Shown: in pieces, positions 39,805 through 41,879 of the stretch | Numbering within the stretch: position 1 is the first letter of the stretch | How the letters are laid out: the number at the start of each line of letters is the position of its first letter | IMG/VR virus record: IMGVR_UViG_3300020154_000003 | Coordinates: 62,001-126,000 of that record | Strand: one strand, 5' to 3' | DNA: 64,000 nucleotides | Position numbers and translations under genes: made by a program | Notes under the pieces: model-generated | Seen by the model: the letters and a program-made list of their open reading frames with translations, nothing else | What the model was told of the DNA's origin: nothing | The model's database searches: none

Positions 39805-39843
39805 AACTTTTTTTTGGAAATTACGTATTTATCTTTACCTTTG
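39805..39843 (+). promoter_or_regulatory. composite promoter of tRNA operon 3
   Basis: AAC-N16-CGTA, GTATTTAT, TACCTTTG. Confidence 0.75.
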
Positions 39844-39879
39844 TGCAACAATTGCGAAGGCAAAAAAGAAAAAGAAATC

Positions 39880-39948
39880 ATGAGAACTTCAAAGACATAT
39901 AAAACTTATAAGTATCAGCCACAAGCTGAGTCGAGTTTTATTGTCTAA
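39880..39948 (+). CDS. leader peptide 3 (Lys/Tyr sensor) MRTSKTYKTYKYQPQAESSFIV
   Basis: 22 aa ORF; AAG ACA TAT AAA ACT TAT AAG TAT run. Confidence 0.85.
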   Translation: MRTSKTYKTYKYQPQAESSFIV

Positions 39949-39971
39949 AAATATCTTGCAAGGAAGACACC

Positions 39972-40004
39972 AAAAACCCGATTCAGAAATGAGTCGGGTT
40001 TTTT
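39972..40004 (+). terminator. attenuator terminator, tRNA operon 3
   Basis: AAAAACCCGATTCA-GAAA-TGAGTCGGGTTTTTT. Confidence 0.92.
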
Positions 40005-40019
40005 GTTTTATAGAGATTT

Positions 40020-40277
40020 ATGCTAGACCTGAAAAAAATAAGTGGCGAGTTTGATGCTCTCTTGAAAACCAAGACCAAAGAGGATTTGGAGAAATGGTTG
40101 CGCATGGATAAAAAGCGAATGAAAAAAGAACGAATACCGAGGAAGGATAAAAAATCCTTGAAAAAAGAAGGTGAGCGTTTCAAAAAGGAATTGAAAAACA
40201 GTCCACTGCTAAAAGGTACTGGACGATCATTTAAAACGGCAGAAGAATTTAAAAGTTATGTCAACAAAAAAGGATAA
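40020..40277 (+). CDS. Lys-rich hypothetical protein
   Basis: 85 aa, very Lys-rich. Confidence 0.55.
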   Translation: MLDLKKISGEFDALLKTKTKEDLEKWLRMDKKRMKKERIPRKDKKSLKKEGERFKKELKNSPLLKGTGRSFKTAEEFKSYVNKKG

Positions 40278-40441
40278 ATGTGAGATTGGAATTTGCGTGT
40301 TGTCGATCATTCGTTCAACTACGAGTGCGACTACACCATGCGATCACACATGCCAATACTACGATAAAATGAAAAAGATGAAACGAAAACAATAAAACTA
40401 CACTACCAGTGAGTCATGTCACGGGTGTGTAGTTAAAAAAC

Positions 40442-40529
40442 GCATCCGTGGCAGAATGGAGAATGATGCCCCACACTTTTAATGTGGACTGTCGTAAGAC
40501 TAACGTAGGTTCGATCCCTACCGGATGCA
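40442..40529 (+). tRNA. tRNA-Lys(TTT) with long variable arm
   Basis: CCACA-CTTTTAA-TGTGG plus GTC-GTAA-GAC arm. Confidence 0.8.
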
Positions 40530-40591
40530 CAAACGTAGATTTATGCGGTGAATAGAGACGCTATTCATCGCAGAATATGCGGAGATTAGTC

Positions 40592-40663
40592 GCCTCCTTA
40601 ACTCAATGGTAGAGTACCATACTTTTAATATGGGAGTTATCAGTTCGAATCTGATAGGGGGTA
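40592..40663 (+). tRNA. tRNA-Lys(TTT)
   Basis: CCATA-CTTTTAA-TATGG. Confidence 0.9.
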
Positions 40664-40666
40664 CTA

Positions 40667-40888
40667 GGGCTTTGCAGATTGTTTCTCAATTGCATAGAAC
40701 ATGTGCCCATATCAAACAAGGGTTCATAGAAATTGAAATACGGGTTGACTTTCGGTGTGGAGAACCGAGCCGCCTATAGGGGCGGTGCCATTGTGCTAAG
40801 GTAAAATAATGTAGAATGCTGCTGAATAGAATAGATGCGCATAAAGATTCAGTAAGGTCTACAGTAGGTTCGAATCCCCTGCAGCCCA
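40667..40888 (+). ncRNA. large structured RNA with tRNA-like ends
   Basis: GGGCT/AGCCC-A ends, GGTTCGAATCC T loop, several internal helices. Confidence 0.55.
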
Positions 40889-40894
40889 CAATAT

Positions 40895-40967
40895 ACCTTC
40901 GTAGCTTAACTGGTAGAGTAGGTGACTCTTAATCATCGGGTTGTGGGTTCGAGTCCCACCGGAGGTA
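40895..40967 (+). tRNA. tRNA-Lys(CTT)
   Basis: GGTGA-CTCTTAA-TCATC. Confidence 0.92.
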
Positions 40968-41272
40968 CATGAATGAAATTAATACCATATGTATGGATTG
41001 TGGAAAAGAGTGTGAACGATGGCAAATCGTAAATACTGCCATGATCGGAAAAGTATGGGAAGTGTGGTGTTATTGTAAGGAATGTAACGTTGAAACTTTT
41101 CATCCTTTTGAGGGTGGAGAAGATGATTAAAAAAAACAATGTTATGAATATTGCGTATAAGTTATAAAGTTCGTAATATTGTCTTCCCAATCGCAGTTAA
41201 TTCTAAGGCGTAGAATGTCACGATAGGAATAAGGTTATATCAAAATGAGGGAGTAGCAATACTTCCTCACAT

Positions 41273-41357
41273 GGGTAGGTAGCAAAGTTCGGTTAAATGC
41301 GCCACGCTGTAAACGTGGTCTCTTCGGAGTTCGGTGGTTCAAATCCATCCCTGCCCA
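41273..41357 (+). tRNA. tRNA-Tyr(GTA)
   Basis: CCACG-CTGTAAA-CGTGG. Confidence 0.92.
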
Positions 41358-41358
41358 C

Positions 41359-41541
41359 AAGACACATCATGGTACTCTGACCGAGAACGATAGTGTGCTG
41401 GATGAAATATAGGTAAGGCCAGCAGAGCGGATAGGAGATTGAATAAGACTACAATCGTCAGTCACTTCCGAGTATAGTTGCACTTCAGAGAGTTTGAGCA
41501 TGTCGGTTATATCGCTTAGATGAAAGGTTCTTGATGTTCTT
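41359..41541 (+). ncRNA. candidate structured RNA
   Basis: Non-coding spacer closed by AAGACACATCA/TGATGTTCTT. Confidence 0.4.
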
Positions 41542-41545
41542 ACAT

Positions 41546-41630
41546 AGGTTGGTAGCAAAGTTCGGTCAAATGCGCTGCGCTGTAAACGCAGTCTCTTCGG
41601 AGTTCGGGGGTTCAAATCCCTCTCAACCTA
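41546..41630 (+). tRNA. tRNA-Tyr(GTA)
   Basis: CTGCG-CTGTAAA-CGCAG. Confidence 0.92.
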
Positions 41631-41796
41631 CAAAATGGACTTAATTAAAGAAACGTATATCGATAAGGAAACTGGCATGTATGTCTCTGTGATTAATAAA
41701 GAAGCATTGATTGATCGAGAGAGTAAAACACCTCAGGAAGCCTTAATAAGATCGTACAATCGATTCATGGATGCAATAAAGAAGCCATTGAAAAAT

Positions 41797-41879
41797 GGGT
41801 AGGTGGCCGAGTGGCTAAAGGCGACAGACTGTAAATCTGTTCTCTTCGGAGTTCGGGGGTTCGAATCCCTCCCTGCCCA
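41797..41879 (+). tRNA. tRNA-Tyr(GTA)
   Basis: ACAGA-CTGTAAA-TCTGT. Confidence 0.95.

Follow-up and report, generated by a model that had tools for sequence, protein, structure and literature searches.

Predicted leader-peptide attenuation of lysine and tyrosine tRNA genes in an uncultured giant phage

How does a giant phage adjust the supply of its own tRNAs, and why would six of its tRNA genes, three for lysine and three for tyrosine, follow a small open reading frame (ORF) that carries a run of lysine and tyrosine codons? These questions are raised by a locus that begins at position 39813 of a 64-kb stretch of DNA, here called the window, which is part of the 366-kb uncultured viral contig IMGVR_UViG_3300020154_000003 (= Ga0196965_1000004). 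An earlier note on this DNA had described the locus as a dedicated Lys/Tyr module matching the targets of anti-phage tRNA-cleaving enzymes. From the analyses presented here, it is quite probable that the tRNA genes of this locus, which we call unit 3, are controlled by a ribosome-mediated (leader-peptide) transcription attenuator. This conclusion is carried by the anatomy of the unit, by a statistical match between leaders and tRNA blocks that extends to three sister units, and by conservation and co-variation in related phages.

Every sequence-level feature that characterizes a leader-peptide attenuator is present in unit 3, which lies on the plus strand. The unit opens with a promoter-like element (39813-39843), wherein TTTG (39813-39816) is followed by a 19-nucleotide spacer holding the sequence CGTATTTA (39824-39831) and then by TACCTTTG (39836-39843); this promoter motif is preserved in relatives. 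Leader ORF 3 (39880-39948) comprises 22 codons from an ATG at 39880 to a TAA stop codon at 39946-39948, has the putative translation MRTSKTYKTYKYQPQAESSFIV, is preceded by an A-rich stretch, and is kept in all relatives. Its codons 5 through 12 (39892-39915) encode the run KTYKTYKY by using AAG, AAA and AAG for lysine, TAT three times for tyrosine, and ACT, ACA and ACT for threonine. An intrinsic terminator (39972-40010), which would serve as the attenuator, begins 24 nucleotides after the leader stop codon. Its 5′ arm (39972-39985), GAAA loop and 3′ arm (39990-40003) form a hairpin of 14 base pairs that is followed by a T-rich tail, TTTTTTGTTTT, and this is the strongest terminator-like site of the region. 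The tRNA genes lie beyond it, and a further terminator identified by the terminator scan (41888-41915) closes the unit.

Three alternative pairings can be drawn for the leader RNA. A 1:2 hairpin (39893-39946), which would act as an anti-antiterminator, appears in minimum free energy folds of the state that lacks a ribosome. It consists of an inner hairpin, UCAGC-CACAA-GCUGA (39915-39929), and an outer pairing of AAAACUU with GAGUUUU. The minimum free energy fold of positions 39860-40015 contains this hairpin together with the terminator (-43.2 kcal/mol, z = -6.5), and none of 200 shuffled sequences equals this value. Region 2 (39926-39946; CUGAGUCGAGUUUU..UGUCU) is the 5′ strand of the antiterminator, with positions 39965-39986 as its predicted partner as long as the ribosomal A site has not passed codon 12. 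Once a ribosome masks the 5′ portion of the leader, the predicted antiterminator pairs CUGAGUCG-A-GUUUU..UGUCU with AGACA..AAAAC-C-CGAUUCAG at -17.7 kcal/mol. The 1:2, 2:3 and 3:4 pairings of unit 3 are mutually exclusive. The earlier note had listed the KTYKTYKY run with both AAA and AAG codons, as well as the antiterminator and 1:2 pairings; the codons read as it had stated with small coordinate corrections only, and folding recovers both structures.

These elements suggest how the unit might operate. Transcription would begin approximately 30 nucleotides 5′ of the leader ORF. If codons 5 through 12 were read without delay, the ribosome would cover region 2, the terminator at 39972-40003 would form, and transcription would stop before the tRNA genes. 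If no ribosome were loaded, the 1:2 hairpin would sequester region 2 and the terminator would again form. If charged tRNA-Lys or tRNA-Tyr were in short supply, the ribosome would be expected to stall on the run, leaving region 1 melted and region 2 free. Free region 2 could then capture the 5′ arm of the terminator, and RNA polymerase would read into the three tRNA-Lys and three tRNA-Tyr genes. Since this output relieves the signal, the circuit would constitute negative feedback on tRNA supply. We infer for this scheme that the leader is translated, that ribosomes stall on it, that polymerase reads through the opened terminator, that transcription and translation are coupled in the host, and that each block is co-transcribed from its leader promoter.

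The consequences of ribosome position were modelled by folding the nascent RNA, cut just 5′ of the terminator 3′ arm, with a mask that reaches 12 nucleotides past the A-site codon, a footprint that is fixed in the model. For leader 3 without a ribosome, the 1:2 hairpin is predicted to form, and the terminator 5′ arm is unpaired with none of its nucleotides seized. With the A site at any of codons 1 through 11, region 2 is predicted to pair with 39965-39986 and to seize 8 of 9 arm nucleotides (-17.7 kcal/mol). The predicted number falls to seven at codon 12, which is the last tyrosine codon of the run, to four at codon 13 and to one at codon 14, and is zero from codon 15 to the stop codon. Because arm seizure falls away past codon 12, the Lys/Tyr run ends where a stalled ribosome would cease to permit antitermination, as in classical attenuators. 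The model places the transition at the end of the Lys/Tyr run in every version folded, which includes the window sequence and six others.

A skeptical view of this arrangement is that small ORFs of this type are ordinary or non-coding, that the hairpins are terminators of upstream genes, that the tRNA blocks are constitutively promoted, and that the match between leader and tRNAs is coincidental. Small ORFs are certainly abundant, as evident by the 548 ATG-started ORFs of 15 to 70 amino acids in the window, and terminators behind genes are normal. However, unit 3 is one of four such units in the window, which are found by way of the CGTATTTA motif and a terminator scan and whose leader ATG codons lie at 28302 (minus strand), 31319, 39880 and 51455. 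In each unit, the promoter motif and a leader ORF are followed by a terminator and then by a block of tRNA genes. The CGTATTTA motif occurs seven times in the window, and four of these copies are located directly upstream of the four leaders. Likewise, of approximately nine strong terminators in the window, four directly follow the four leaders. All four leader ORFs stop at TAA, and between them the four blocks serve all 20 amino acids.

Unit 1 (27109-28345, minus strand) has its motif at 28330-28337, a leader beginning MKTLVNIALQHPQHQPQCSC (28204-28302) with the run QHPQHQPQ, a terminator at 28155-28183, and tRNAs for Pro, His, Pro, one that is unassigned, Gln and Gln. Unit 2 (31284-34775, plus strand) has its motif at 31284-31291, a leader beginning MKTLISSVTLEALALNAMAVALVEDDM (31319-31435) with the run LEALALNAMAVALVEDDM, a terminator at 31457-31483, and tRNAs for Asp (two), one unassigned, Leu(CAA), Ala, Leu(UAA), Glu (two), Met (three) and Val (three). 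Unit 4 (51420-63659, plus strand) has its motif at 51420-51427, a leader beginning MEKLTSNINRSNWCGSNSISGNILGSTFRGTNGLMF (51455-51586) with the 33-residue run LTSNINRSNWCGSNSISGNILGSTFRGTNGLMF, a terminator at 51611-51633, and 26 tRNAs for Asn, Phe, Thr, Arg, Ile, Met, Ser, Gly, Trp, Leu-CUN and Cys together with two CUA suppressors. The last three of these tRNAs may be separated from unit 4 by a gene terminator at 62683-62711.

The match between leaders and blocks was scored with a window-scan statistic, the -log10 p of a leader's enrichment in the amino-acid set of its own block. Leaders 1 through 4 score 8.5, 6.4, 4.0 and 9.3, values that random peptides of phage composition reach in 0, 0, 26 and 0 of 20000 trials, respectively. 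When each leader is ranked for its own set among the 548 window ORFs, the ranks are 1, 1, 2 and 1. The correspondence extends to codons, with 7 of 8, 15 of 18, 6 of 8 and 32 of 33 run codons in units 1 through 4 decodable by the unit's own block and only 0 to 3 by any other block; if four-way wobble is permitted for Pro and Ala, units 1 and 2 rise to 8 of 8 and 17 of 18. Thus, the match holds in four units of four, each with p from below 1e-3 to below 5e-5, and it extends to the codons used. Moreover, each leader is separated from the gene upstream of it by the conserved promoter motif, the stretch from terminator to tRNAs has no further copy of that motif, and the ORF and region 2 are conserved or co-vary in diverged phages while the adjacent spacer is free to change. 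These observations leave very little room for coincidence.

The leucine codons provide a finer view of the same correspondence. The leucine anticodons are split between two blocks, with CAA and UAA in block 2 and AAG and UAG in block 4. All leucine codons in the leader-2 run are UUR, both in the window and in relatives L024, L027, L036 and L037. Leader 4 uses CUN for three of its four leucine codons in the window, with the lone UUA located within region 2, and for 8 of 10 in the combined set of window, L036 and L037, against a background usage of 57% UUR. We argue from this match at the level of isoacceptors that tRNA supply is sensed rather than amino-acid supply. It seems likely that the four attenuators together form a codon-resolved tRNA homeostat that divides the genetic code, with each unit gauging the speed of decoding on the codons of its own block, the leucine isoacceptors included, and permitting transcription of its tRNA genes once decoding slows. 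The three sister units would act as proposed for unit 3 but for the other 18 amino acids, so that the whole tRNA set could be supplied on demand, group by group.

The ribosome-mask model predicts that leader 1, like leader 3, switches among three states, with the arm seized only when the A site is at codons 8 through 15. Leaders 2 and 4 are predicted to have two states, wherein the antiterminator is the default and the terminator forms only once the ribosome is past the run. This default opening of units 2 and 4 in the absence of a ribosome is what might be expected if the attenuators were infection timers, or general sensors of translation capacity that open as host translation declines, and indeed any slowdown of the leader ribosome would yield read-through. 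However, such a device would need neither four disjoint codon sets that mirror the units' own blocks nor a division of leucine codons into UUR and CUN, and we regard this explanation as improbable.

Do relatives of this phage preserve the features on which the proposed switch depends? The design recurs in at least 10 related uncultured jumbo phages, which represent a few lineages of one phage group. A MAFFT alignment of the diverged leader-3 versions misaligned the switch region, and we therefore folded each sequence separately and compared the strands in a cross-pairing matrix. In four close strains (L030-L033), wherein a 136-amino-acid neighbour gene is identical, the leader-3 ORF and the terminator are invariant, and the spacer of approximately 20 nucleotides between stop codon and terminator occurs in three unrelated versions. 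The sole change to the ORF among close strains, G to A at 39930, converts a G·U pair of the antiterminator to an A-U pair.

More distant relatives were retrieved by way of homologues of a neighbouring PNKP gene that are 57-63% identical, some of which reside on contigs of 196-371 kb. Four of these (L034-L037) have the same gene order and retain the Lys/Tyr block, each with a leader and a terminator, and their leader-3 sequences are MSTIMTYKTYKYQPQAELSSIV (L034), MTTVSTYYKSYKKSRKEIGFTM (L035), MRKSYTYKSYKKSLVRQG (L036) and MKKSYTYKSYKKSLNRQG (L037). A pattern scan of IMG/VR added five contigs (L040, L043, L046, L047 and L049) whose leader cores include STYYLYKSYK and KSYYGYKSYKK, and each of these contigs has a terminator and Lys/Tyr tRNAs 3′ of the leader. 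Chance matches to the pattern served as an internal control, and none of them shows the succession of short ORF, terminator and tRNA genes. The Lys/Tyr run is preserved in at least nine diverged versions through changes between AAA and AAG and between TAT and TAC, and a terminator separates leader 3 from the tRNAs in every relative. The threonine positions of the window leader are Ser or Thr in relatives. Since Lys and Tyr remain constant while Thr exchanges with Ser, threonine occupies a spacer-like position rather than one that is sensed and conserved.

Region 2 co-varies with the terminator arm, as in the pairs GAGUCG/CCCGAUUC, GAAUUG/CCUGAUUC and GAGAUCGG/CCCCGAUCU. In L047, the motif GAAUCGGG is retained in another reading frame, where it encodes E-S-G and not G-I-G, which indicates selection on the RNA rather than on the peptide. 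The mean energy of cognate 2:3 duplexes is -12.5 kcal/mol versus -8.7 kcal/mol for non-cognate combinations, and the cognate partner ranks first or second in 12 of 14 rows. Leaders 1, 2 and 4 are also conserved, with examples in L024, L027, L036, L037, L038 and L102. Two other PNKP relatives (L038 and L039) are not syntenic with the window, and L038 still has a leader-4 unit. Relatives retrieved through an RNA ligase gene (L021 and L022) are high-GC phages, and L022 has a tRNA array with no leader in front. One candidate for further co-variation was rejected: a tRNA-Leu(CAG) that follows the leader of L040 had seemed to match the leucine codon of this leader, yet the latter is CTT, which CAG cannot read, and ARAGORN finds no tRNA-Leu in L043, L046 or L049, whose leaders have the same CTT codon.

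Alternative RNA structures by themselves are no proof of translation, and T-boxes are known attenuators that sense tRNA. The switch might therefore be real but operated without a translating ribosome, either by binding of uncharged tRNA in the manner of a T-box or by a phage protein, with the ORF incidental. The patterns of conservation speak strongly against this reading, because the identity of the amino acids survives synonymous changes (AAA to AAG and TAT to TAC) and turnover of the surrounding sequence, and because the end of the Lys/Tyr run tracks the start of region 2 at the distance of a ribosome footprint in every version. Likewise, a run of 33 codons for 11 amino acids, as found in leader 4, cannot be a single specifier. 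No match to a T-box, a riboswitch or an Rfam leader family was found; for T-boxes the search covered the window at the gathering score and positions 39780-41950 at E values up to 1. We consider a sensor other than the ribosome highly unlikely.

Several observations nevertheless weigh against leader-peptide attenuation or limit its reach. Taken alone, leader 3 has the least statistical support among the four (p about 1e-3), and two of the eight codons in its run, both for threonine, have their tRNAs in block 4. The antiterminated state is the default without a ribosome in leaders 2 and 4, as well as in some relatives, and these have two states and not three. The terminator is thermodynamically favored in all modelled states, by 8 kcal/mol at best, and therefore read-through must be kinetic; the classical trp leader likewise keeps its terminator thermodynamically favored. 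Starvation for amino acids would also stall the ribosome, a situation in which extra tRNA is no help, and further unrecognized promoters may be present inside the tRNA blocks. The soil runs labelled ‘metatranscriptomic’ that contain the locus represent it by contigs only, with flat coverage, and probably derive from DNA. Finally, the phage is uncultured, and its host is likewise uncultured and only guessed.

The genes that unit 3 would control were called by ARAGORN and are supported by the Rfam tRNA model with scores of 51.7-65.1 bits. They are tRNA-Lys(UUU) with a length of 89 nucleotides and a long variable arm (40442-40530; 51.7 bits), tRNA-Lys(UUU) (40592-40664; 65.1 bits), tRNA-Lys(CUU) (40895-40968; 63.5 bits), and three copies of tRNA-Tyr(GUA) at 41273-41358 (56.9 bits), 41546-41631 (54.9 bits) and 41797-41880 (61.0 bits). 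The copies are 56-70% identical in pairwise comparisons for Lys and 76-85% for Tyr, and both sets vary in their anticodon stems, in agreement with the earlier description of three divergent Lys and three Tyr tRNAs. That description had also flagged three threonine codons in a leader whose block lacks tRNA-Thr. The point is correct: ARAGORN with introns allowed returns the same 52 genes in the window and no tRNA-Thr in block 3, and Rfam searches of 39780-41950 at E values up to 1 recover the six tRNAs only, with no hidden tRNA-Thr. The exchange of Ser and Thr in relatives explains this apparent discrepancy.

The 89-nucleotide tRNA-Lys(UUU) combines its long variable arm with an enlarged D loop, a class-II-like form that is unusual for tRNA-Lys, and a 90-nucleotide counterpart is conserved in L034 (7284-7373, minus strand). 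Immediately before this gene, and after a conserved AAACGAAAAC box, is a hairpin formed by AACUACAC...GUGUAGUU and followed by AAAAA (40396-40436, plus strand). The hairpin is also present in L034, L035, L036 and L037, where the letters of the stem vary while the pairing stays, and it may be a processing signal. The first ORF past the attenuator (40020-40277) encodes 85 amino acids, 23 of which (27%) are lysine. The ORF is found in close strains, and L034 and L036 have a shorter or dissimilar one; it might add a further level of lysine sensing, at translation, or merely encode a basic protein. Contigs from related soil strains fuse tRNA-Tyr copies 1 and 2 and copies 2 and 3, omitting 192 and 256 nucleotides (41360-41553 and 41537-41794), which suggests that the copy number of tRNA-Tyr varies through recombination between these genes.

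Why lysine and tyrosine should share a unit of their own is a question that invites a more specific answer. Anticodon nucleases of the PrrC, PARIS AriB and retron Ec78 PtuAB types act on tRNA-Lys or tRNA-Tyr, and variants of tRNA-Lys and tRNA-Tyr from phage T5 reportedly escape PARIS, PrrC-type or PtuAB nucleases. Unit 3 might therefore be a specific, inducible counter-defence that senses cleavage of host tRNA-Lys or tRNA-Tyr and supplies putatively cleavage-resistant variants. This proposal is a sub-case of the attenuator explanation, to which it adds a claim about the selective reason. The logic of the attenuator would indeed respond to tRNA cleavage, Lys and Tyr occupy their own small unit and remain together in all relatives seen, and the tRNA copies differ in their anticodon stems. 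Genes for RNA repair are also close. A PNKP gene (43407-44315, minus strand; Pfam HAD_PNKP, 4.5e-41, with AAA_33) is located 1.5 kb from the block and is syntenic with the Lys/Tyr block in L034-L037, and a gene for an HNH domain and an RNA ligase (48759-49874, plus strand; Pfam RNA_ligase, 2.5e-34, with HNH) is approximately 7 kb away. In phage T4, this pair of enzymes repairs tRNA-Lys that has been cut by PrrC.

However, an identical device governs all other tRNA groups, and the design of unit 3 is not distinct from that of its sisters. Divergent redundancy is also general, with multiple dissimilar copies being usual for the Met, Val, Glu, Asp, Arg, Ile and Gln tRNAs in the window. The claim of a dedicated Lys/Tyr module is thus not supported, given that the same device precedes three other blocks and all 20 amino acids are covered. 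The associated proposal of an inducible counter-defence fares better in part: the predicted logic would sense loss of Lys and Tyr tRNAs, by cleavage among other causes, yet nothing singles out these two amino acids. Because the device is generic and divergent copies are general, we favor a general feedback on tRNA supply over a dedicated anti-tRNase module. A specialized role in counter-defence is plausible and partly supported, being compatible with the proposed mechanism and with the nearby PNKP and RNA ligase genes, but we find it rather doubtful as the reason for the existence of unit 3.

An 11-mer, ATCAGCCACAA, which encodes Q-P-Q, is common to leaders 1 and 3 (leader-1 copy at 28252-28262, minus strand), as had also been pointed out previously. 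It folds as a small hairpin between the regulatory run and region 2 (39915-39929, plus strand; 28247-28262, minus strand), and is not found in more distant versions of leader 3. This hairpin may cause polymerase to pause, or may be a trace of common origin.

Additional unusual features accompany the sister units. Two tRNAs of unit 4 with CUA anticodons (61540-61613 and 63586-63659, plus strand; Rfam scores of 57.6 and 67.1 bits) are labelled ‘Pyl’ by ARAGORN. They are amber suppressors, which hints at TAG read-through or recoding in the phage. Odd anticodon loops are present in two ARAGORN tRNAs, at 27259-27333 (minus strand; ‘tg’) and 31896-31967 (plus strand; ‘ca’). The counterpart of the latter in L024 is a normal tRNA-Met(CAU), and that of the former in L025 has a four-base ‘gtga’ anticodon. 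A conserved tRNA-like element follows the leader-2 terminator (31520-31705, plus strand), and occurs also in L024 (7730-7905), L027 (5545-5700) and L034 (15290-15400), all on the minus strand. It consists of a D-arm-like GTGGTGGAAYTGGTATACAC, an insert of approximately 100-130 nucleotides and a T arm, GCAGGTTCGAGTCCTGTC, and receives no ARAGORN or Rfam call. In L027, L034 and L037, the piece just 5′ of this element resembles a permuted tRNA in which the T arm precedes the D arm.

A weak tRNA-like sequence is likewise located between the leader-4 terminator and tRNA-Asn (51646-51740, plus strand). It has a perfect T arm, a long variable region and an anticodon-like loop, CUCCAAA (CCA, Trp), and scores 27 bits with the tRNA-Sec model versus a threshold of 47. 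In L102, a normal tRNA-Trp is the first tRNA past leader 4. A box, GTTCTTTGAAAA, lies a few bases past the leader-2 terminator (31491-31503, plus strand) and is found at a similar short distance behind attenuator terminators in L024, L037, L043, L046 and L049, in units 2 and 3.

What kind of phage carries these units? The source contig encodes a T4-type major capsid protein, a portal protein and a terminase, and the source is a giant T4-like phage of an uncultured jumbo-phage group. Its capsid protein has no more than 40% identity with that of any GenBank phage, with the best partial match to Flavobacterium phages, beside huge uncultured phages. A GenBank blastn search with the window DNA returned tRNA matches only and no close phage, and near-identical DNA occurs in runs labelled soil metagenome. 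The window has a GC content of 36.7% and 52 tRNA genes by ARAGORN, 50 of which exceed the Rfam gathering score. Promoters of Bacteroidota have a TTTG/TAnnTTTG layout. We guess that the host belongs to the Bacteroidota, as suggested by promoter-like elements of the form TTTG-N19-TAnnTTTG and by A-rich start contexts that lack a Shine-Dalgarno sequence.

Searches of IMG/VR and JGI metagenomes with the 136-amino-acid neighbour and a GNAT-like protein returned the source contig only, as did a homologue search with the former, and the homologues of a 587-amino-acid neighbour reach no more than 49% identity. A relative of the GNAT-like neighbour, on a phage-like record of 37.9 kb (P0007), adjoins a Thg1 homologue (tRNA-His guanylyltransferase family) and a gene for ribosomal protein S21, which are further translation-related genes in the wider phage group.

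The purpose of phage tRNAs has long been debated, with compensation for codon usage, replacement of degraded pools and escape from tRNase defences among the proposals. A built-in sensor of decoding speed would show that tRNA supply is regulated by demand, and each leader would be a natural, codon-specific reporter of tRNA sufficiency. The phage would possess an automatic answer to loss of host tRNA, whether by shut-off, by mismatched codon usage or by a tRNA-cleaving defence. If correct, this would be the first leader-peptide attenuation of tRNA genes and the first in a virus, and would extend a textbook mechanism to stable RNA genes and to viruses, with leaders that integrate up to 11 amino acids at isoacceptor resolution. 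Such leaders could also be compact parts for tRNA-level biosensors.

How does the proposed system compare with those already known? As in the tRNA clusters of T4 and T5 and the arrays of huge phages, the tRNA genes here are numerous and clustered and include redundant, divergent copies, those for Lys and Tyr among them; PNKP and RNA ligase repair genes occur in the same genome region here. The present blocks have predicted demand-sensing attenuators in front. We found no report of demand-sensing or leader-peptide attenuators before tRNA genes, in phages or elsewhere, in the searchable literature, whose coverage is incomplete. T-boxes bind uncharged tRNA by using a specifier codon and the T-box sequence, and they control genes for synthetases, biosynthesis and transport. 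The units resemble them in reporting the supply of specific tRNAs through transcription attenuation with alternative terminator and antiterminator structures, but differ in that sensing would occur through a translated leader ORF and the targets are tRNA genes.

The closest parallels are the classical leader-peptide attenuators of Proteobacteria, which include trpL, hisL, leuL, pheL, the multi-residue thrL and ilvL, and that of pheST (pheM). Leader 3 shares with them a short ORF with a run of codons, an intrinsic terminator, mutually exclusive 1:2, 2:3 and 3:4 pairings, and a predicted dependence on ribosome position. Precedents for more than one amino acid are thrL (Thr, Ile) and ilvL (Ile, Leu, Val). 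The units bear no sequence relation to Rfam leader families; at the gathering score, the window yields only tRNAs and no such family, with the best other hit being Thr_leader at 21.1 bits versus a threshold of 55, in the terminator only. Leader-peptide systems outside Proteobacteria have been discussed (PMC2965389). Unlike the classical leaders, those described here are encoded by a virus and precede tRNA genes rather than biosynthetic or synthetase genes, such that the output would be the very molecule that is sensed. Furthermore, four units partition the code, one leader would report on 11 amino acids, and specificity for leucine appears to reach the level of codons and isoacceptors. We rate the system as a known mechanism put to use on a new type of target, in a virus and in an architecture that partitions the genetic code.

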